A program made the translations under genes and the position numbers. A stretch of DNA of 64,000 nt, from IMG/VR virus record IMGVR_UViG_3300046507_000773, positions 1-64,000 of that record; one strand, written 5' to 3'. Each line of letters starts with the position of its first letter. Within the stretch, counting starts at the first letter, position 1. A model generated the notes under the pieces. It was given only the letters and a program-made list of their open reading frames with translations, was not told where the DNA came from and searched no databases. This document shows, one piece after another, positions 244 through 49,446 of this stretch.

Positions 244-1059
244 ATGCCTCTGATGTCCGCACGACCAAGGCGCAAACTCAGTAGTCCCAACACGCTCACA
301 CTGGGCAACGAAAACTCAGTTGACGTGTACGCGCGCGCCATTGCAAATGGCTGGGACAAGGTTTCTCCATTGTCTGTTATCGTCACTGGCGATATCGGCT
401 CCAATTCAACGGCAACTCCCGCCCTGCTGTTTAGTGGCTCGTATCCCGACGTTACGCTTACCATCAACGCAGGTGTCTATGTTTGTGGTCGCGGCGGTTT
501 GGGCGGTGCCGTGGGTCAGGCTGGTCAGGTTGGTGGCAATGCTATCCAAACAACCGGCAAAATCAAGATCGATAACAAAGGCGTCATTGGTGCCGGTGGA
601 GGTGGTGGCGCCGGTAACTGGACTAACTCCTATTCGGCCAGCGGCGTAACTTACGGTGGTGATGGAGCTGGTTTGCCAGTCTTGGTTCCTCGTACTGGTG
701 CTGCCACGCCTTCTGCGACTAAGACCAATGGCGGTACTGGCACGCGCGGTTATTCATCCGGCGGTGGCGGTTACGTCAACGGCGGTGTAGGCGGCGCTCC
801 TGGTTCGGTCGGCGGTACGGGTCCAAGTGGAGGCGGAGGCGGTCTCGGTGGTAACGGTGCTGCAAGTCAGGGTGTGGGTCCTGGTACCACCTTTACTGAC
901 CCAGGCGGCAATGGACAAAATGGTCCAGGTACGACTGACAGTGATCCGACGTACAACGACTATGGAAGCTGGGCAGGTGGCGTATCTGGTAAATCCATCG
1001 TCGGCATTGCTAACGTGACCTACGTCACGCAAGGCACCATCTACGGACCTACGTCATGA
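244..1059 (+). CDS. Glycine-rich tail-fibre/virion-associated protein
   Basis: 271 aa with GGxGG/GAGGGGG runs and motifs GRGGLGG and IDNKGVIGAGGGGGAG typical of Gly-rich phage fibre proteins. RBS GAAGGA. Confidence 0.7.
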   Translation: MPLMSARPRRKLSSPNTLTLGNENSVDVYARAIANGWDKVSPLSVIVTGDIGSNSTATPALLFSGSYPDVTLTINAGVYVCGRGGLGGAVGQAGQVGGNAIQTTGKIKIDNKGVIGAGGGGGAGNWTNSYSASGVTYGGDGAGLPVLVPRTGAATPSATKTNGGTGTRGYSSGGGGYVNGGVGGAPGSVGGTGPSGGGGGLGGNGAASQGVGPGTTFTDPGGNGQNGPGTTDSDPTYNDYGSWAGGVSGKSIVGIANVTYVTQGTIYGPTS

Positions 1060-12088: not shown

Positions 12089-12301
12089 ATGAAGCACTTT
12101 GTCTATTTCATCTCTGGTGTTCTTGTCGCCAGTTTCGTGCAACTCGGCATTCCGGCTGCTAAAGCCTGGGGCCTGCAGGAGCAACTCAAGAAAGACCGTG
12201 CCAAGTACCAGCTCTATCTGGACTGCCGCGACAAAGAAAAAACCAAGTACGCCACTTACGAGTGTCTGCGTCTGAACAACCTGGGCTTCGAACAGCTCTA
12301 A
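12089..12301 (+). CDS. Small protein with signal peptide/TM
   Basis: 70 aa, hydrophobic N-terminus, two Cys. Confidence 0.7.
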   Translation: MKHFVYFISGVLVASFVQLGIPAAKAWGLQEQLKKDRAKYQLYLDCRDKEKTKYATYECLRLNNLGFEQL

Positions 12302-12312
12302 GGAAAAAGAAC

Positions 12313-13359
12313 ATGAAACAGTACTACGACACCGTGAACTTCATTCGCGAAACCGGTGACCAGCTGGAAAACCGTACCGGTATCGATGCGATCACGGTAC
12401 CGGGCGTTGCAATGTATTTCCGCATGAAGGACGGCTTCCCGATGCTGGGTGGTCGCTTTACGCCCTTCAAGTCCATGATCGGTGAACTGTGTGCATTCTA
12501 TCGCGCTTGCACCAGCGCTGCTCAATTCCGTGAGCTGGGCAGCAAGGTCTGGGATAAGAACGCCAATGATCTTGGCGTCGACAATTCGAACGCCTGGCTG
12601 CGTAACCCGTTCCGTGAAGGCGAAGACCACCTGGGCCCGATCTACGGTGACATGTGGCGCGCATGGCCCGGCTACAAAGTTATCGGCCGTCCTTCGATCG
12701 ATGAACCCGATGAAGCACATATGCGCTATGACGAGATCATAGCGCAGATCGAAAAGGACGGCTGGGAGCACATCGGTTACGCCGAGGTCGGCTCACCCGG
12801 TACACCGAAAGGTCTTCTGTATTACAAAAAGATCGATCAACTGGGTGACGCGATCCGTACCGTCATCAAGAACCCGAACAGCCGCCGCATCCTGTTCCAT
12901 GCCTGGAATCCGGCCGTGCTGGACGAAGTCTCGCTGCCTGCCTGTCACCTGCTGTATCAGCTGCTGCCGAATCCGAAAACGAAGGTGCTGAACCTGTGCG
13001 TGTACCTGCGCTCCAACGACATCGGCCTGGGTGCTCCGTACAACATCTCGCAAGCTGCGGCTCAGTTGCACTTCATCTCTCGTCTGACCGGCTATACGCC
13101 TGGCACTATTTCGTACTTCGCTGCTGATGCCCACGTCTACGTCAATCAGCTTGAATGGCTGGACGAACAGCTGGAACTGTGGAATGCGGGTCAGCGTTAC
13201 GAACTGCCGCGCATCGAAATCAGCGACCGGGTGCCGGACTGTAGTCATGATGCAGAAAAAGCAGTGGCCTGGCTTACTGAAGTAGAACCATCGGACTTCA
13301 TCCTGCACGACTACCAGTACCACACCCTGAAAACCCCAACCCCTCCCATGGCGGTGTGA
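12313..13359 (+). CDS. thyA: Thymidylate synthase (ThyA type)
   Basis: NPNSRRILFHAWNP, LPACH catalytic Cys, YLRSNDIGLGAPYN, DAHVYVNQ. Start reassigned to ATG 12313 after AAGGA. Confidence 0.95.
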   Translation: MKQYYDTVNFIRETGDQLENRTGIDAITVPGVAMYFRMKDGFPMLGGRFTPFKSMIGELCAFYRACTSAAQFRELGSKVWDKNANDLGVDNSNAWLRNPFREGEDHLGPIYGDMWRAWPGYKVIGRPSIDEPDEAHMRYDEIIAQIEKDGWEHIGYAEVGSPGTPKGLLYYKKIDQLGDAIRTVIKNPNSRRILFHAWNPAVLDEVSLPACHLLYQLLPNPKTKVLNLCVYLRSNDIGLGAPYNISQAAAQLHFISRLTGYTPGTISYFAADAHVYVNQLEWLDEQLELWNAGQRYELPRIEISDRVPDCSHDAEKAVAWLTEVEPSDFILHDYQYHTLKTPTPPMAV

Positions 13360-13973: not shown

Positions 13974-15071
13974 ATGCAGTTGAATTTCGATGACGAGGAC
14001 ACCCTCGTCACCAACCAAGCAGCACCGGAAGGTGCTTCCGCAGCAGACGTCGCTAAGCGTGTGAACGTCAGCGAGAAGCGCATCATCAACGGTAAAACGG
14101 ACGTGAACCAGCTGGTTCCGTTCAAGCACAAGTGGGCCTGGGACAAGTATCTGGCAGGTTGCGCAAACCACTGGATGCCGCAAGAAGTGAACATGCAGCG
14201 CGATATCGAACTGTGGAAAGATCCGAAAGGTCTGTCCGATGACGAACGTCGCCTGGTCAAGCGCAACCTCGGCTTCTTCGTGACCGCCGACTCGCTGGCA
14301 GCCAACAACATCGTGCTGGGCACCTATCGCCACATCACGTCGCCGGAATGCCGCCAGTACCTGCTGCGTCAAGCTTTCGAAGAAGCGATCCACACCCACG
14401 CCTACCAGTACATCGTCGAGTCGCTCGGCCTGGACGAGAAGGAAGTCTTCAACGCGTACAACGAGATCCCGTCGATCCGTAATAAGGACCAGTTCCTGAT
14501 TCCGTTCATCGACGTTTTGACCAACCCGGAATTCAAAACCGGCACGATCGAAGCGGATCAGACGCTCCTGAAGTCCCTGATCGTTTTCGCCTGCATGATG
14601 GAAGGCCTGTTCTTCTACGTGGGCTTCACGCAGATCCTGGCACTGGGTCGTCAAAACAAGATGGTCGGCGCCGCCGAGCAGTATCAATACATCTTGCGCG
14701 ACGAATCGATGCACTGCAACTTCGGCATCGACCTGATCAACTCGATCAAGGCAGAAGACGATCGCCTGTTCACGCCGGCATTCCAGGAAGAGATCAAAGC
14801 CCTGTTCCATCAGGCTGTTGAACTCGAATGCGCTTACGCTGACGACACCATGCCGCGTGGCGTGCTGGGTCTGAATGCAGGCATGTTCAAAGCGTACCTG
14901 CGCTTCATCGCCAACCGTCGTGCTGTGCAGATCGGCTTGCCGCCGCTCTTCGCACAGGAAGAAAACCCGTTCCCGTGGATGGCCGAGATGATCGACCTGA
15001 AGAAGGAGCGTAACTTCTTCGAAACCCGTGTTACCGAATATCAAACCGGTGGCGCACTGAACTGGGATTAA
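13974..15071 (+). CDS. nrdB: Ribonucleotide reductase class Ia beta subunit
   Basis: [23 protein letters not shown] (radical Tyr retained), [23 protein letters not shown]. Confidence 0.97.
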
Positions 15072-17154: not shown

Positions 17155-17284
17155 GTTTCCGTGACAATGAATGATATGTGTTGTCAATTAAAAACACACC
17201 GCATTCGACACCATATGTCGTAACCCACGAAGGATGCTCGAAAGCATCTCTAACCTAATTCTGCCCGCCAAACCAGGAATGCCC

Positions 17285-17665
17285 ATGTCCTCCGAACTTA
17301 ACCTCATTGATGTCAACTCCCCGCACCTCATCGAGGTCTCGGACGAGCAGGCGCGCCGTTTCGATGTCACGGGTTTCGACACCGCAAACAATCCGCACAA
17401 CGCCGATCGCCAGGGTTTTCAGGCCCGCTTCGGTCGCACCACCCTCGTCTTCCAAAGTCACGTACCCAAGGAAGGCGAAACTCCCGACGGCATTACCGAT
17501 GAAGTGCTGTTTGCCATCCTGGAAAAGCGTCTGGAGTCGTACAACTGCGTGATCGAGAAATGCCCGATCAACAGTGAAGCTTTGCTGCACCTGCAGCTGG
17601 CCCATGGCCTCATTCGTCAACGCACTTTGCGCGACGAAACGCTGGTCACTGGCCCCAAGTATTAA
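17285..17665 (+). CDS. Tad1-like (Thoeris anti-defence 1) nucleotide-sponge homolog
   Basis: TLVFQ...KE...GITDEVLFAILEKRLESY...N..AL.HL..A...R..R follows the Tad1 pattern as recalled. Start placed at ATG 17285 by RBS spacing. Confidence 0.6.
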   Translation: MSSELNLIDVNSPHLIEVSDEQARRFDVTGFDTANNPHNADRQGFQARFGRTTLVFQSHVPKEGETPDGITDEVLFAILEKRLESYNCVIEKCPINSEALLHLQLAHGLIRQRTLRDETLVTGPKY

Positions 17666-29664: not shown

Positions 29665-30546
29665 ATGATTAAGAGCGATAAGTGGATCAAGTCCAAGTGC
29701 ATGTTGCCCTTGGCGGTTGCGCATTACATGGTGCGTGGTTCGGCCTTCGATGGTCCGTTCCGAAAGCACGAATTTATCTACGGCGATGCGACCACCGACA
29801 TCGACGCGGAGTTCGACAAAATCGTCAACCGTGTTTCGCAGGAGAACAACGTCATCAGCGGTTCGACGCAACTGGAATACGTTGGCGACATCCAGGTCAA
29901 CGACTTCCAGCCGATGATCGAACCTTTCGTGCCGACGCAAATCCGGACTGCTGGCCATGACCGACATGTCCGCATGCTGGCGATGCCGCGCAATACGCCG
30001 CAAGAAATGCTGGCCCGCACGCTCCTGGATTTCGATGGCGACGACGAATTCGAAAAGCGTAAGATCATCTCGCGTGGTCTGACGAGCTTCGGTTACGATG
30101 TGACGCTGGCTGAAGAAGCTGCAATCTTCACCAACGTCAACTGCGCCGTCATCGATCCGCTGAACTTTACGGAAGACACGCTGCAGCGCGTCATTGCGAA
30201 AGACGGCTACTTCCTCATGCCGCCCAACAGCTACCTGCTGGGTTACACGAAGGAGTACTTCCGCATGCCGCGTAATGTCATTGCCGTCGCGCTGGGCAAG
30301 TCGACTTACGCTCGTGCCGGCGCCATCGTGAACGTCACACCGATCGAACCGGGCTTTGAAGGTACCGTCGTCATCGAGATCGCCAACGCGACCAGCCTGC
30401 CGATGAAGGTCTACGCCAACCAGGGTATCGCACAGTTCCTCTTCTTCGAATCCGACGAAGACTGTGAAACCTCCTACGCTGACCGTAATGGTGGCGAAGG
30501 TGGCAAGTACCAGGGCCAACGCGGCCTGGTGACTCCGCGGGGCTAA
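29665..30546 (+). CDS. dcd: dCTP deaminase with two N-terminal insertions
   Basis: [61 protein letters not shown]. Confidence 0.92.
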
Positions 30547-31897: not shown

Positions 31898-31983
31898 TTT
31901 TTATCATGTTGCCGTATTAAATAGATAACGCCTTTGTCGCGTAGTGCACTCCAGTGGGGAGTGCCTTTTTTAGGAGAAGTGCC

Positions 31984-32730
31984 ATGAGTACCAACGTAAT
32001 TGCAACGATCCCTTTCCTCCAAGGTCAAATGGAGATCATTGATTTTCCGACGGACGTGAAGAAATTTGCGGAGTTTCCCGATGGTCGCTTCCTCGTGCTC
32101 GATGGCACCGGTCGCAACATGGGGCCTCAGCACTTTATCCGTATCGACACGTTAGCACACCACTCGACGGTATCGTCGCTTGCGGGTAAGAAAATCCTTG
32201 ATGCCAATATTCAGCTGCTGGCCTGGGTAAAAGACAAATACGGCTTCGAAGCTTCTATTGGAGGTAAGAGTTTGGAGCGTGCTTTAGTTCGCACGATCCA
32301 CCCAGCAAAAGCAAAGGGTCGTCCAAGCGTGCCCAATGCCATTTATGGCGTAAGTCGTCCGAATGCAGGTTCTATCATCGAAATGCGCATGCCGCGTGGT
32401 ATTTCGATGTTGGCATATGGCACCGGGGAACAAATCCCGGAGATCGAAGACACGAAAAAGAACTTTGTCGGTAATTTGAAGTTTGTAGGACGTAAGCAGC
32501 GTTTTCGTATCGGCCACAACAACCAATTTGATTGGTGTGATCAGATTCTTGCTCAACCTGGCGACAAGCTGGATGAACGAGTTGAAGAGGCTTCTCGCTA
32601 TCTCCCTACGCTCATTTCGCCGGCAGATACAATCAGTGAAATGCGCTACTATTTCGAACAAGCGTTCCCCTGGGCCGCAACCTTGTTGGGAGACATCACC
32701 ATCGATTCTCCCTTGACGCTTGTGAAGTAA
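31984..32730 (+). CDS. Hypothetical protein
   Basis: AGGAG RBS before MSTNV. Confidence 0.75.
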   Translation: MSTNVIATIPFLQGQMEIIDFPTDVKKFAEFPDGRFLVLDGTGRNMGPQHFIRIDTLAHHSTVSSLAGKKILDANIQLLAWVKDKYGFEASIGGKSLERALVRTIHPAKAKGRPSVPNAIYGVSRPNAGSIIEMRMPRGISMLAYGTGEQIPEIEDTKKNFVGNLKFVGRKQRFRIGHNNQFDWCDQILAQPGDKLDERVEEASRYLPTLISPADTISEMRYYFEQAFPWAATLLGDITIDSPLTLVK

Positions 32731-32748
32731 CCTTTACCGAAGGATATC

Positions 32749-33327
32749 ATGACTCCGCTTATTCCCATTTACAGTGACGAGAGCAAGAAGTTTTTCGTCG
32801 ATCCGGCTCTCCATAAGCCCTACGAGCGCCAGGTGTCGGGCGACATCAGCGTGACCACGAACTTCCTCAAGTTCGGCGAACGTTTCGACCTGATGGATAT
32901 CTCGAGCGCAACCGAGATGTTCGTGACCGGCATCCGTGACGTGACCGATACGATCGATCCGGCGGTGACACTGGAAAAGATCCTGGTGTCGTTCGGTGAC
33001 CTGGGTACTGCAATTTTCGATGTACGCAACCAAGTGTTCGCATCCATGCACTTTCCGCAGGGGGCCAGTTTCGATACCGTCAATCTCGATTTCAGTACCA
33101 CGAAGAAGTTCGAGAACATCGACATTATCCCGAACCCGCCGGTGGGTGACACGTTCCGCATCAAAGTCACGGGCCATGTGAACCTGCGGACTGGCGACAC
33201 GTTCCTGACGGCCATTCTGGAAGCGATGCCGGCCGGTGTGAATATTCCGCGACCCAGTCTCGAAGGGTACACCCTGCAAGCAAATGCGACCAACATCGCG
33301 CGTTTGGCGACGCCGCTGACTGCCTAG
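32749..33327 (+). CDS. Free-standing paralog of the central domain of the major capsid protein
   Basis: Aligns by eye end-to-end to MCP residues ~222-441 encoded at 46960-47619. Confidence 0.85.
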   Translation: MTPLIPIYSDESKKFFVDPALHKPYERQVSGDISVTTNFLKFGERFDLMDISSATEMFVTGIRDVTDTIDPAVTLEKILVSFGDLGTAIFDVRNQVFASMHFPQGASFDTVNLDFSTTKKFENIDIIPNPPVGDTFRIKVTGHVNLRTGDTFLTAILEAMPAGVNIPRPSLEGYTLQANATNIARLATPLTA

Positions 33328-33331
33328 TCGC

Positions 33332-33354
33332 AAGGGGGCTTCGGCCCCCGTTTA
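33332..33354 (+). terminator. Terminator-like hairpin
   Basis: GGGGGC-TTCG-GCCCCC followed by GTTTATGCCG. Confidence 0.75.
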
Positions 33355-33425
33355 TGCCGGGAAATTCTTGGCCCTTTTTACCTATGGCTGGTATCGAATG
33401 TAGTACCAACCAACAAGGAGAAAAC

Positions 33426-33875
33426 ATGAGTACTTACGACAATGGCTTGACTGTCATCGTCAAGGGCGGCACCGCTTCCGGCAAAACGACTGTGGCAGCT
33501 TTCATCGGGCAGAAACTGCAAGAAGCTGGCTTTTCTCACATCGAGTACGACTGGCAAGAACAGCTCGTTCCTGGTGCGATCGAAGACAAGCTGGAGTCGC
33601 TTGCCGCTCGTCGTTCTGACGACAAGTTCTTCCAGAAGCCGATTCGTATCATCGAAGAACAAGAGCATCGCCGGCCCGTTCACAATGAAGAAAAGTTCAG
33701 TGAATACACTTACGAGCCACTCGTGACGCCCTCGGATTATGCAGCCGAAGCCGTACTCGACAGTCTGCGCGCTCGTAAAGGCGTGGGCAGTGAACTCGAC
33801 GGATACGACCAGGAAACCCTGGGTAGCATCTGTAAGGACATCAAGGAGATTATCTCCGAGTCCATGGGCAAGTAA
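33426..33875 (+). CDS. Small P-loop (Walker A) protein related to the 57-59 kb family
   Basis: VIVKGGTASGKTTVAAFIGQKLQEAGFS. Confidence 0.75.
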   Translation: MSTYDNGLTVIVKGGTASGKTTVAAFIGQKLQEAGFSHIEYDWQEQLVPGAIEDKLESLAARRSDDKFFQKPIRIIEEQEHRRPVHNEEKFSEYTYEPLVTPSDYAAEAVLDSLRARKGVGSELDGYDQETLGSICKDIKEIISESMGK

Positions 33876-34035
33876 AGCAGCATAAGACGGGGGCCGAGTG
33901 CCCCCGCTTTCTGCCCGTAGTAAATACAAAAATATATCGACTACCCGAAGTATATTCAGTTCCTTAAAACAGATGTTTGAAACGTTCCAAGAGATCGTAG
34001 CTTAGTACCCACCATCTAGTCAAAAGGAGTGAGCA

Positions 34036-34422
34036 ATGAAGCTTCAGGGTGAAAGTGAATTAAAGAACGTTGAAGTTGTAAAACTCAATGAAGGAGAACA
34101 TTTTGCCGGGGTCGTACTCGGCAATGGAGAAGGACCCGATTACTACCTCGTGTTGCTACCGCATGAACTTCACGATGCCACGTGGGCAGATGCCTTAGAG
34201 TGGGCCGCAAGCTTCGAAGGAACGTTGCCCAATAGGCGCGAGCTTTCGCTTCTGAAAGCCAACTTGGCCGAAAAGTTCGAGCCCGTTCAGTACTGGTCTT
34301 CGGAGAAGAATGAGCACCGTAAGCGAGAAGTGTGGATACAGCACTTCCGCAACGGTAATCAAACTTCCTATGGCCAGTGCTTCCGTGGATCGGCGCGCGC
34401 TGTTCGCCGGGTGCTGATGTAA
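34036..34422 (+). CDS. DUF1566/Lcl-like domain protein
   Basis: W.DA..WA...G.LP.RREL.LL, YWSSE, W.Q.F..G.Q, ARAVRR. Confidence 0.85.
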   Translation: MKLQGESELKNVEVVKLNEGEHFAGVVLGNGEGPDYYLVLLPHELHDATWADALEWAASFEGTLPNRRELSLLKANLAEKFEPVQYWSSEKNEHRKREVWIQHFRNGNQTSYGQCFRGSARAVRRVLM

Positions 34423-40749: not shown

Positions 40750-41703
40750 ATGACTCTCGTAGTTTTCAAGAACGGAATTCTCGCCACCGATTCGCGCCGC
40801 ACGCACGTGTGTTCCAGAACCCACTCGAACAAGTGTCCTTACTGCGAAAAGCCCGCTGTCTCGGTAAAGGACGATGCGGACAAACTTTTCGTCGTTCGAA
40901 AGAAAGGTTCCATCAAGTTTCGTAACGTCACCATTCTCGCGTACGCGTGTGCTGGCGATGTCGAGATGATTAACCGCATTAAAGGGGTCCTTCGTCTGCA
41001 CGATGATCTCGAAGCGGTGTACAAGAGCTACCTCGCTATTCATGGTACGCATACCAAGAACGAGCGCACCTGCACTGTCATGCTCATCGGCGTGGAACAC
41101 AACTTCATCGTTCGCATCCCCGAACAAGGCAGTCTGGATGTGAAGGTTTTCGAGAAGGACAAGTTCCTCGCCATCGGTTCCGGCACGCAGGGGGCACGCT
41201 GGATCAATAAGCTCATGCCTGAAGCATGGGCACCGCTCATTATCAACATGGTGATGGAGGACGACATTGGCGTTGGCGGTACGATCTCGTACGTGGATCT
41301 GAATGAAGAGATAGAGGAAGGCAGTCTGCGTCCTCCAGTCATGCTTCATGTCCCGAACGATCCGAAAGCCATGATTGAACGCGCCAACAAGGTCTTCAGC
41401 ATGGGTGAAGCTGTCGAAGCGGAAAATGAAGTGGTCAAGGTTCGCAAGGAAGCAGGTTATCCTGAAGTCTGGGATTTGCCGATCTCCGACCTGGGGCTGA
41501 AAGTGCATACGCTCAACAACTTGATGACTGAAGGCGGCATTACCCATGTCGCTGAACTCATCATGTTCACGCCGCAAACGCTCCTGAAGATCCCCAAGAT
41601 CGGCAAGGTGGCACTGCAAGAAGTCCACGCCCGCCTGAAAGATCGTAAGCTCACCCTGGGCACCGATACCAACAGCTGGCCGAATCACAAGAAGGCAAAG
41701 TAA
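40750..41703 (+). CDS. HslV/Ntn-hydrolase-like peptidase fused to an RNAP alpha-subunit C-terminal domain
   Basis: Thr at position 2 (MTLVVF..GILATDSR), FLAIGSG. The C-terminal 80 aa align to the alpha-CTD through LTLG....SWP. Confidence 0.85.
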   Translation: MTLVVFKNGILATDSRRTHVCSRTHSNKCPYCEKPAVSVKDDADKLFVVRKKGSIKFRNVTILAYACAGDVEMINRIKGVLRLHDDLEAVYKSYLAIHGTHTKNERTCTVMLIGVEHNFIVRIPEQGSLDVKVFEKDKFLAIGSGTQGARWINKLMPEAWAPLIINMVMEDDIGVGGTISYVDLNEEIEEGSLRPPVMLHVPNDPKAMIERANKVFSMGEAVEAENEVVKVRKEAGYPEVWDLPISDLGLKVHTLNNLMTEGGITHVAELIMFTPQTLLKIPKIGKVALQEVHARLKDRKLTLGTDTNSWPNHKKAK

Positions 41704-46296: not shown

Positions 46297-48474
46297 ATGA
46301 ATCCGTTCCAAAACAAAACCAAGAAGCCGGCACTGCCGGATTCGCAAACCGCGGTCATGCTGCGCTCCACCCTGAGCCAGCTGAACAAGAACAGCTCGCT
46401 GCTGAGCTCGCAAGTTGCCCGCGGCGCCTTCGCCCTGGAAGGTCTGGACGACGAAACCGTCCTGGCCATGGACAACGCAGCTGAAGGCCTGAACGTCGCC
46501 CTGGAACAGATCTTCCAGGAAGCCGGCTTCAAAGCAACCCCGCAGCAGAAGCAGTCGGCAATGATCGCCGGCATGATGGGCGGCGACGTGGGCGCCTACC
46601 TGGGCCACGCTGTTTCCCTGGAAGGTTTCCAGGCCAAGAACACCGACGTCGTGATCGTCGGCGCCGCTGACGCAATCGCCTCGCGTCCGGCAATGGAAGC
46701 GTACGACGAGAAGGAACTGAAGAACTCGATCGCCTACTCGGTCGCGTACAACATGAACTCGCCGCGTCAAGACGCGTTCGGCGAAGCCTTCTTCCCGACC
46801 GTCGTCGTGAACCCGGACCAGGTCGGCTACCAGATCTCGATCCGCCTGACCTACGTCTACCCGGAAGTCCGCCGCAACATCGACGGCTCCGTCAACGACT
46901 TCAAGAAGCGCAACATCATCCAGGCAATCGTCGACCCGTCGATCCTGAAGACCGAGCAGCTGAAGGTCGTGCCGGTGTTCCGTAACGAATCGAAGGCCAA
47001 CTTCGTCGACGAAACCCTGCTGCCGCCGAAGAACATCACCTTCGAAGGCGAGACCATCACCACCAGCGCCCTGCGCTTCGACAACAAGTTCTCGCTGCTG
47101 GGCATCTCCCAGACCCCGGCCCTGCTGGAAACCGGCGTCATGGACAGCACCGACGCGCTGGACGCGGCGATCACGCTGAGCAACGTCTACATGTCGGTCG
47201 CCGGCAAAGTGGGCGGCGTCGACAAGACCGAGGTGTTCAAGTTCATGACGGCCAACATGCCGCTGTCGAACTTCATCTCGATGCAGCAAGACGACTACCG
47301 CATGATGCAAGTCACCTTCATGACCGAAGGCCTGCTGATGACCGGTAACACCAAGACCGTCGCTGGCGCCGCTTCGGGCGTGCTGGCCGACATCGCTGCA
47401 CAGAAGGTCTCGGTCCGTCTGGAACTGACCGTGAACGGCACCGTGAACGTCGAACTGGGTACCACCAACCTGATGGCATCGAAAGTGCGCGTCAAGTCGG
47501 TCACCGACGAAGACGGCAACCTGCTGTCGCTGACCTCGCCGGGCGTCGGCAAGGACATCGCGGACCTGTTCGCAACGGCTGAAGCCATCGGCTACGACCT
47601 GCAAGCGCAGCGTACCAACAGCAACCGTCGTCAGCGCGGCACCCTGCTGGGCCAGACGATCCAGAACCAGGTGTACAACGTGCCCCTGCGCTCGCCGATC
47701 ACCATCCCGCGTCCGCAAACCGTTGGCGATGCCAACGACGCCTCGGACCTGGCTGCACTGATCTCGACGACCCGCATCCGCATCTCGAACGCGGCCGTCG
47801 ACAAGCTGCTGGAAACCGCTGACCAGCTGAAAGAGCTGGTTGCCCAGAACGACCTGCTGGAAAACAACCTGCCGATCCTGGGTATCGCCCGTCACCTGGT
47901 GACCGCCTTCTACGACGAGTTCACCGTCGACGTGCAAGCGTCGATGAACAACCTGACCTCGTCCGAGAAGTACGACGACATCAGCGCCACGCTGATCAAC
48001 CAACTGCGCGACCTCGTGTATCGCATGCTGGTGAAATCGGCCTACCAGGCTGCTGCTGACGCGCTGGCTGGCGGCATCGCTCCGATGCCTGACGTCATCA
48101 TCGGTACCGATCCGAAGACCGCTCGCTACCTGATGGTTTCGGGCGACCTGCGCACCCTCGGCACCGAAGTGAACATCAAGCTGGTCACCACGCTGAACCT
48201 GCAGATGCGCGACACCATCATCGTCGCCTTCGGCCAGCCGAACGCCGGCGACGGTACGCCGAACCCGCTGCACTACGGCAACATGGTCTGGAAACCGGAA
48301 ATGACCCTGATCATGCCGACCCAGCGTAACGGCTCGAACTCGAAAGAGATCACCGTCACCCCGTCGTTCAACCACATCGTGAACGTGCCGATCATGGCCC
48401 GTATCTACGTGAAGGGCATCAGCGACGCGGTGGGCAGCAAAAGCACTGTTGCCTTCGAACAGGTCGGTCCGTAA
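46297..48474 (+). CDS. Major capsid protein (phiKZ gp120-like)
   Basis: 725 aa, extreme codon bias, N-terminal A/S-x-E maturation-type sites (ALE, SLE, AME), QDAFGEAFFPT, synteny. Confidence 0.92.
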   Translation: MNPFQNKTKKPALPDSQTAVMLRSTLSQLNKNSSLLSSQVARGAFALEGLDDETVLAMDNAAEGLNVALEQIFQEAGFKATPQQKQSAMIAGMMGGDVGAYLGHAVSLEGFQAKNTDVVIVGAADAIASRPAMEAYDEKELKNSIAYSVAYNMNSPRQDAFGEAFFPTVVVNPDQVGYQISIRLTYVYPEVRRNIDGSVNDFKKRNIIQAIVDPSILKTEQLKVVPVFRNESKANFVDETLLPPKNITFEGETITTSALRFDNKFSLLGISQTPALLETGVMDSTDALDAAITLSNVYMSVAGKVGGVDKTEVFKFMTANMPLSNFISMQQDDYRMMQVTFMTEGLLMTGNTKTVAGAASGVLADIAAQKVSVRLELTVNGTVNVELGTTNLMASKVRVKSVTDEDGNLLSLTSPGVGKDIADLFATAEAIGYDLQAQRTNSNRRQRGTLLGQTIQNQVYNVPLRSPITIPRPQTVGDANDASDLAALISTTRIRISNAAVDKLLETADQLKELVAQNDLLENNLPILGIARHLVTAFYDEFTVDVQASMNNLTSSEKYDDISATLINQLRDLVYRMLVKSAYQAAADALAGGIAPMPDVIIGTDPKTARYLMVSGDLRTLGTEVNIKLVTTLNLQMRDTIIVAFGQPNAGDGTPNPLHYGNMVWKPEMTLIMPTQRNGSNSKEITVTPSFNHIVNVPIMARIYVKGISDAVGSKSTVAFEQVGP

Positions 48475-48702: not shown

Positions 48703-49446
48703 ATGGATACTCTGGTTTATACGCTGTTTCCCCCAGTACCGGTTATCGCTGAGGGCGCCACACAAGAACAACGTGAGAGCATCAAGATCGGCGCAGGCAT
48801 CGTTTTAGAGAAGGCCAAGTCAATGGCAAATACCGTGGAGCGTATTCGCGTCCACAACGATGCAATCGGTAAGATCATCGAAGTGAAGGAAAACCTTCAA
48901 AGGTACATCGGCCAACTTCAAGCCGCGTTTGAAGAAGGCTTTGTCAATAAGGTTGCACTTCGTCCTTACTACGCACAAGAAACGGTCATCATTAAACAGA
49001 GCATGGAAATGTTCTTACTGACCGATAGCTTCATCCGCTCGGTCAAGGACCTCGTTGAGAAAACGCGCCCCAAGGATGCCGAGGAATGGAATCCGCGGAT
49101 AGCGGCAGTGACGGACCCTGTGATTCGTCGCGCCCTTCTGGCTAACGAGATGATTCGTGGCATGGAGAACGTAACGATTCTCGATAGCCCCCACATCCGT
49201 GTTCGCGGCCAGATCTTTATGACGGTTGCTAATCCGCCTAAAGAAGCAGGTGTCGCCGATCCAGCCACCTTCGGTATGTTCCTCTTTGCCCCGCAGCAAA
49301 TCAAGGATCTTACGCCGGAAGAGTTCCCCATCGTTCATCCGTTTTTCAAGGACAGCCCAGAGCCTGCTCGGGAGTTCTCGTTCAACTACGATCTGATGGT
49401 GAACCAGTCAGTGATGAAGTACTTTCGCGTCGAAGGACTGATGTGA
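48703..49446 (+). CDS. Hypothetical protein
   Basis: 247 aa. Confidence 0.75.
   Translation: MDTLVYTLFPPVPVIAEGATQEQRESIKIGAGIVLEKAKSMANTVERIRVHNDAIGKIIEVKENLQRYIGQLQAAFEEGFVNKVALRPYYAQETVIIKQSMEMFLLTDSFIRSVKDLVEKTRPKDAEEWNPRIAAVTDPVIRRALLANEMIRGMENVTILDSPHIRVRGQIFMTVANPPKEAGVADPATFGMFLFAPQQIKDLTPEEFPIVHPFFKDSPEPAREFSFNYDLMVNQSVMKYFRVEGLM

Follow-up and report, generated by a model that had tools for sequence, protein, structure and literature searches.

The window, meaning the whole 64,000-nucleotide stretch of DNA that was analysed, is the first 64 kb of a 226.8-kb viral contig from a rhizosphere metagenome. A megablast of the region against a collection of phage isolates gave no match, so that the phage is new at the DNA level. 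Its 725-amino acid major capsid protein (MCP) matches Pfam family PF25620 at E=3.7e-193, and is 50% identical to that of Burkholderia phage FLC9 and about 42% identical to those of Ralstonia phages RP12 and RP31; this is therefore a phiKZ-like jumbo phage, probably (by inference) of a betaproteobacterial host. Some 13.0 kb before the MCP gene (end to start; 13.5 kb start to start) lies a small ORF that encodes a homolog of only the insertion (I) domain of that protein, with a Shine-Dalgarno-like site just before it and terminator-like hairpins just after (Table 1). It is probably co-transcribed with the gene upstream, while the gene directly downstream encodes a small P-loop protein that is a possible functional partner. 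The window also holds a second MCP-derived gene, directly after the MCP gene itself, and an ORF tentatively related to Tad1.

Table 1. Features of the window discussed in the text
Feature	Position	Strand	Description and basis
Upstream gene	31984..32730	+	About 248 aa, start inferred; no family match; ends 18 nt before the I-domain ORF; preceded by a terminator-like site at 31946-31964; replaced by an unrelated 135-aa gene in the syntenic relative L002
Shine-Dalgarno-like site	32740..32744	+	AAGGA, 4 nt upstream of the ATG; read directly from the sequence
Stand-alone I-domain ORF	32749..33327	+	192 aa, ATG start; sequence, profile and predicted fold match only the I domain of phiKZ-type MCPs
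Terminator-like hairpins	33334..33382	+	GGGGGC-TTCG-GCCCCC at 33334-33349 and a second stem at 33356-33372 followed by a T-run; consensus scans and sequence reading only
Small P-loop gene	33426..33875	+	149 aa, Walker A GGTASGKTT; 91% identical in L002
Major capsid protein gene	46297..48474	+	725 aa, phiKZ type; I domain at residues about 221-446
P/A-core gene	48703..49446	+	247 aa; HK97 P/A core only, without N-arm or I domain
Tad1/gp184-like ORF	17234..17665	+	143 aa; tentative

An I domain encoded on its own

Using BLASTP, amino acids 4-86 of the 192-aa protein align with residues 224-306 of the window's own MCP at 36% identity (E=1e-13). PF25620 matches the protein at E=2.4e-22 (79 bits against a cutoff of 27), though only over profile positions 145-267 of 635, and no other Pfam family, including the Tad2 family PF11195, was matched; PHROG 3231, the major head protein, matches at E=3.7e-19. 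By tblastn, amino acids 2-190 align end to end with the MCPs of Klebsiella, Serratia and Erwinia jumbo phages at 25-27% identity, and among PDB sequences the protein matches phiKZ gp120 residues 262-335 and three other jumbo-phage MCPs. An HMM built from stand-alone relatives aligns over positions 3-182 of 183 with residues 221-446 of the window MCP, and end to end with the I domain of every MCP tested. The phiKZ capsid structure divides gp120 into an N-arm (164-204), I-domain linkers (205-247 and 473-484), the I domain (248-472) and the P/A core (485-727) (PMC11297242). With the numbering calibrated on gp120 of phage PA7, the stand-alone protein runs from about residue 250 to about residue 470, and is thus exactly the I domain; nothing in it corresponds to 164-247 or 485-727. 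Both MCP termini (propeptide and N-arm; P/A core and C-arm) are absent, and it is therefore not itself an MCP. An AlphaFold2 model built on an alignment of relatives, with pLDDT 94.4 and pTM 0.89, is a single beta-rich domain which, in the PDB, superposes only on the phiKp24 and phiKZ MCPs (E=2e-12 and 3e-11; query-normalised TM 0.73-0.77 over about 220 columns); the next hit is noise.

The observation made in the first-pass annotation, of a free-standing counterpart of MCP residues about 222-441 with its own ribosome-binding site and terminator, is confirmed by these alignments: the range and the peptide pairs it set side by side are right (MAFFT), and its distance of 14 kb is fair, though the terminators remain consensus matches only. 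Its interpretation is supported only in part. The inference of a discrete folded domain kept by selection holds and can be sharpened to the I domain, whereas calling the gene a copy is misleading, as discussed below; of its three suggested roles, a decoy for capsid-sensing immunity gains circumstantial support, a decoration or minor capsid protein is disfavoured, and an assembly modulator remains possible.

Decay in relatives, which had been named beforehand, together with lack of expression, as grounds for refuting the observation, was not found. A syntenic relative on a 99.5-kb Logan contig (L002) has an ortholog of identical length, 88.5% identical in protein and 81% in DNA, with 62 synonymous against 22 non-synonymous codon differences (dN=0.081, dS=0.94, dN/dS=0.086). 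This places it among the best-conserved genes of a region whose proteins are typically about 60-80% identical. In contigs from other rhizosphere samples there are no indels in the ORF, and 17 of the 20 listed variant sites fall at third codon positions.

The P/A-core gene aligns with MCP residues 490-708 (BLASTP, E=2e-8) and has an ortholog of the same length, P0154, with 59% identity on the relative's contig. Its AlphaFold2 model (pLDDT 83.8) has as its top Foldseek hits the phiKZ and phiKp24 MCPs (E=2e-8 to 4e-8), followed by other HK97 capsid proteins and encapsulins. This phage therefore keeps two separate MCP-derived genes, one per structural block, in addition to the full MCP. The Tad1/gp184-like ORF was found by tblastn with the Tad1-like C-terminus of P0019, one of the fusion proteins described below (E=1.3e-9 in a small database); direct comparison with Tad1 PDB chains gives only E=0.5, so that this homology is transitive and tentative.

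A family of stand-alone and fused I-domain proteins

An exhaustive HMMER search of 1.8 billion cluster representatives returned 174 hits, about a third of which are stand-alone proteins of 165-225 aa that begin and end at the same motifs as the window protein, an N-terminal IPxY..ES..FVD and a C-terminal GY.L.A.R.N.NRR; they make up more than 45 stand-alone clusters at 50% identity. The window protein fits the HMM of this family over positions 3-180 of 183, covering amino acids 1-185 of 192 (E=1.2e-55). Of 47 aligned members, 28 match PHROG 36436, annotated as of unknown function (best E=9e-9); the window protein itself matches that PHROG only weakly, at E=0.0017 over amino acids 2-78. Two apparent multi-repeat relatives, P0076 and P0137, proved to be Ig/cadherin-repeat proteins and were set aside as false positives. 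A word-indexed profile search found few members, a search for related loci with a narrow alignment returned only the window's own contig and one MCP, and ESM Atlas searches added nothing beyond "viral hypothetical" and generic P-loop hits.

Members are also found in cultured phages. RP12 ORF214 and RP31 ORF211 are listed as predicted ORFs of 229 aa. By fold, Foldseek against BFVD found 201phi2-1 B3FIW9 (E=7.6e-14, TM 0.76/0.77, rmsd 3.1), RP12 A0A1L7N135 (TM 0.71/0.61), two proteins of Edwardsiella phage pEt-SU and a 315-aa Phabio protein, along with weaker matches to proteins of PhiPA3, Psa21, PhiEaH1 and FBKp24. B3FIW9 was confirmed to correspond to 201phi2-1 gp106 (188 aa; HMM E=3.9e-21). 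The distribution is patchy: no stand-alone copy was detected by tblastn in FLC9, the closest isolate, and no phiKZ protein appeared among the significant BFVD fold hits. Literature searches found no description of stand-alone or fused I-domain proteins, of 201phi2-1 gp106, of RP12 ORF214 or of PHROG 36436, though the I domain itself is known and Pfam recognises the similarity.

In a careful IQ-TREE analysis of 45 I domains, the MCP-borne domains and the stand-alone or fused ones separate on one branch (support 79/63, and 82% of bootstrap trees), with the window protein placed beside P0002, P0004 and P0005 (100/97). Forcing it together with the resident MCP costs 45.8 log-likelihood units (AU test p=0.0017); it is thus not a recent copy of that gene, but a member of an old and widespread family. 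An earlier AU test on a 139-row quick tree was uninformative (p=0.70), since the constrained search there found a better tree than the unconverged free search. The stand-alone members share deletions of gp120 segments about 368-380 and about 425-447 and have longer branches than MCP I domains. Conservation of the published I-I contact residues (phiKZ R296, D366, K415 and D424) is uninformative, because they vary even among MCPs.

Several relatives carry the I domain fused to other modules. Four clusters (P0019, P0035, P0017 and P0021) have it at the N-terminus, followed by a domain that matches phiKZ gp184 (E=3.4e-16) and Tad1 structures (E=1.4e-11), while P0063 has a Tad2-like domain in front of it (PF11195, E=8.5e-8, above the gathering score). 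In P0007, P0010, P0012 and P0115 a small P-loop module precedes it. The fusion-bearing contig L010 shares flanking genes with the window and with L002, so that these loci are syntenic, and the gene directly downstream of the window ORF also encodes a small P-loop protein; however, hhalign gives 95% probability over only 33 Walker A columns, which is not enough to claim specific homology, and this link is a lead only.

In 201phi2-1, gp106 is encoded directly after the nuclear-shell protein chimallin (gp105) and before the nvRNAP subunit gp107, and a family member lies two genes from chimallin on another contig, L017, whose chimallin gave no tblastn hit in the phage collection. RP12 ORF214 sits beside RtcB, PRPP synthase, a nicotinamide/nicotinate phosphoribosyltransferase and an RNA ligase. 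Elsewhere the genes lie in arrays of small, same-strand, unannotated genes, and never in a head-morphogenesis cluster. RP31 ORF211 is absent from the 32 virion proteins identified by LC-MS/MS, and gp106 lacks the note of identification by mass spectrometry that virion proteins carry in the 201phi2-1 record; both are arguments from absence, made through homologs of the window protein.

Possible roles and comparison with known systems

What the analysis establishes is the identity of the protein, compact and soluble-looking, as a complete I domain and nothing else, its predicted fold, its maintenance by purifying selection, its membership of an old, fast-diverging and patchily distributed family in nucleus-forming and related jumbo phages, and the associations just described; lacking the HK97 core, it cannot build capsomers. 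Its expression within the infected cell, its absence from the virion as an abundant part, its binding of any partner and every step of the mechanisms below are inferred. The reading tentatively preferred, though short of even odds, is that it is an intracellular mimic of the most exposed part of the capsid protein, used in counter-defence. It would most likely occupy a host factor that recognises the MCP, such as a capsid-sensing immune sensor of the kind shown for Thoeris ThsB, which is activated by phage major capsid proteins (PMC12578639), without providing the assembled-capsid context needed for activation; in relatives the same domain would tether Tad1-like or Tad2-like signal sponges to that site. 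The patchy, accessory-like distribution, the fast divergence between lineages, the early or accessory gene contexts, the apparent non-virion status and the two independent fusions to unrelated Thoeris sponge families favour this view, but it rests on association alone, with no expression, localisation or interaction data for any member and no RNA run listed. The window gene's own neighbourhood has no recognisable anti-defence gene, no precedent is known for a capsid-domain paralog acting as an immune decoy, and the high conservation between the window and L002 is not what a rapidly racing decoy would typically show. Absence from virion proteomes is also weak evidence, since the RP31 list is short and a few copies per particle would be missed. 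A bolder and unlikely form of this view, which the data nonetheless leave standing, is that jumbo phages excise the exposed domain of their own capsid protein as a soluble mimic that engages a TIR/Thoeris-type or other capsid-sensing receptor, and in some lineages tether gcADPR or cyclic-nucleotide sponges to the place where the alarm signal is made; this would be the first case of a virus using a domain of its own capsid protein as an immune decoy and targeting module.

The main rival, somewhat more doubtful, is an adaptor or assembly modulator that binds the phage's own MCP through the natural I-domain contacts, and would either chaperone or time assembly or anchor itself, and in relatives a fused cargo such as Tad1 or Tad2, to procapsids for delivery into the next cell. 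The known binding partners of an I domain are other MCP parts: symmetric I-I pairs are the main inter-capsomer contact in phiKZ and Goslar, and I domains also pack on a neighbor's linkers and P domain (PMC11297242; Goslar preprint). The non-essential minor capsid protein gp184 of phiKZ is Tad1; its N-terminus is wedged in the shell, and its C-terminus is freed by the head protease and thought to be injected at the next infection (10.1101/2025.11.23.690004), so that capsid-mediated delivery explains the Tad1 fusions, with the same order of N-terminal anchor and C-terminal cargo, equally well. The P/A-core gene kept next to the MCP gene is also in keeping with this. On the other hand, homologs were not detected in the RP31 virion and are not tagged in 201phi2-1, the I domain lies on the outer capsid surface whereas packaged cargo is inside, the segments missing from stand-alone members are next to the published I-I contact residues, and the patchy distribution does not fit a core assembly role. 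The remaining readings appear unlikely. Since penton-hexon contacts are I-I dimers, the portal vertex, where the penton is missing, should (by inference) expose unpaired I domains, and a free I domain might pair with them as a low-copy plug that stabilises that vertex, or help orient capsids on the phage nucleus; five to ten copies per virion could escape proteomics, and the proximity to chimallin is suggestive, but this is pure inference, the patchy distribution argues against a core docking function, and ChmB is the protein proposed to act in capsid docking. An abundant decoration or cement protein would suit a surface domain that self-pairs, but is disfavoured by both virion data sets and by the position of the genes outside structural modules. 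A dominant-negative weapon that caps the I-I interface of a co-infecting relative's MCP would fit the fast divergence, patchy distribution and variable neighboring genes, but there is no evidence of specificity for foreign over self MCP, and the protein is about as distant from every MCP I domain as from its own. That it is a functionless remnant of a duplicated MCP gene, suggested only by its being a partial MCP homolog, is refuted, as far as sequence evidence can go, by the dN/dS, the intact length in the relative and in other strains, the exact domain boundaries, the confident model and the size of the family.

Capsid proteins are now known triggers of bacterial immunity, but how large phages hide or blunt that signal is open, and this family gives a concrete candidate that is present in genetically tractable model phages (201phi2-1 and RP12) and has natural fusions to two unrelated Thoeris sponge families. 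Even if the role turns out to be structural or in assembly, it would show that an HK97 insertion domain can live and evolve as an independent protein; together with the stand-alone P/A core, this bears on how insertion domains and decoration proteins of capsids arise. It also gives an annotation to PHROG 36436 and to dozens of "hypothetical" jumbo-phage genes.

The closest known structure is the I domain of the phiKZ-type MCPs themselves (gp120 248-472; PDB 8Y6V, 8BFL; PF25620), with the same fold, homologous sequence over the entire length and the same boundary motifs; the stand-alone protein is about 30-40 aa shorter, is encoded without propeptide, N-arm, linkers, P/A core or C-arm, and falls in a separate clade. 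The stand-alone proteins of 201phi2-1, RP12 and RP31 and PHROG 36436, of 188-229 aa, recognised by HMM, tblastn and fold matches, annotated as hypothetical or of unknown function and with no described function, are only 16-31% identical to it and have different neighborhoods, with chimallin and nvRNAP in 201phi2-1 and NAD and RNA-repair genes in RP12. In phiKZ gp184 the N-terminal part is not an I domain, and the protein sits on the inner capsid surface; the window protein has no Tad1 domain, which is seen only in its fused relatives. The T4 vertex protein gp24 and the size-redirecting capsid homolog Ccm of SaPIbov5 are likewise duplicated capsid-protein genes put to a new use (Ccm, PDB 7RWZ, appears among the fold hits of the window's P/A-core protein), but those keep the whole HK97 fold and co-assemble into shells, while here only a peripheral insertion domain is kept, which cannot occupy a lattice position. 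The proposed logic is the same as for phage proteins that stop an immune sensor from being activated by a virion protein, such as DSAD1 against the tail-tube sensor DSR2 (PMC11087589). No sensor is known for phiKZ-type MCPs, and DSAD1 is not described as a homolog of the trigger, whereas here the candidate blocker is an excised domain of the trigger itself.

A second capsid-derived gene and other genes of the window

Directly after the gene for the phiKZ-type major capsid protein (MCP) lies a second MCP-derived paralog, which covers only the HK97 P/A core (MCP residues 490-708; BLASTP E=2e-8). It is conserved at 59% identity in the relative, and its AF2 model matches the phiKZ and phiKp24 MCPs as well as other HK97 proteins. 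Further small genes near I-domain genes show faint MCP-like matches and are possibly more MCP-fragment genes: one on contig L011 matches PF25620 profile positions 69-103 (E=5e-6, below cutoff), while one on contig L010 matches the I-domain HMM at E=0.0015. A few other genes of the window can be annotated, as listed in the table, though most of its large ORFs have no Pfam match.

Positions of capsid-related, fusion and other genes in the window and in related sequences
Sequence	Position	Strand	Feature
Window	48703-49446	+	MCP-derived paralog, 247 aa
Window	17234-17665	+	Tad1/gp184-like ORF, 143 aa
L011	10001-11455		P0019, fusion of I domain and Tad1/gp184-like domain
L017	769-1674		P0063, fusion of Tad2-like PF11195 domain and I domain
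Window	33426-33875		Small P-loop protein
L010	3655-4578		P0007, fusion of P-loop module and I domain
Window	32248-34213		Region compared with a related strain (runs X3, X4)
L011	214-834		Protein of 206 aa with faint PF25620 match
L010	4604-5443		Protein of 269 aa with faint I-domain HMM match
NC_041911.1	196759-204001		RP12 ORF209-ORF214
Window	244-1059		gp38-like tail-fibre adhesin
Window	12262-13359		Thymidylate synthase
Window	13974-15071		Ribonucleotide reductase small subunit
Window	29665-30546		dCTP deaminase-like protein
Window	40750-41703		Protein with RNA polymerase alpha C-terminal domain

The I-domain locus and the I-domain trees

A small P-loop protein is encoded directly downstream of the I-domain gene. 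Relatives (P0007, P0010, P0012 and P0115) fuse a small P-loop module to the I domain, at a locus that shares flanking genes with the window and with contig L002, though the similarity between the P-loop parts is limited to the Walker A region. In a related strain (runs X3, X4), the upstream gene region differs by about 13% (99 differences in 747 bases, with a compensating +1/-1 indel pair at 32489/32493), while the 3' part of the I-domain gene plus the P-loop gene differ by about 2%; in L002 the upstream gene is replaced by an unrelated 135-aa gene. There is a recombination or replacement hot spot just upstream of the I-domain gene.

The quick IQ-TREE search on 139 I domains was not converged, since a constrained search found a tree 25 log-likelihood units better. 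Conclusions from that quick tree alone should not be trusted, and the careful 45-row analysis was used instead.

Links to Thoeris sponges and to RP12

Natural fusions join the MCP I domain to a C-terminal Tad1/gp184-like domain (P0019, P0035, P0017 and P0021) and to an N-terminal Tad2-like PF11195 domain (P0063); contig L017, which encodes the latter, carries chimallin two genes downstream of the fusion. The 143-aa ORF of the window resembles the Tad1/gp184-like C-terminus of P0019 (tblastn E=1.3e-9 in a small database) but reaches only E=0.5 when compared directly with Tad1 structures; it is a possible stand-alone Thoeris sponge or gp184 equivalent. In RP12, the I-domain gene ends a run of genes for an RNA ligase, a hypothetical protein, nicotinamide/nicotinate phosphoribosyltransferase, PRPP synthase and RtcB, a gene set which, in our own reading of the annotations, is reminiscent of NAD-salvage and RNA-repair counter-defence modules.
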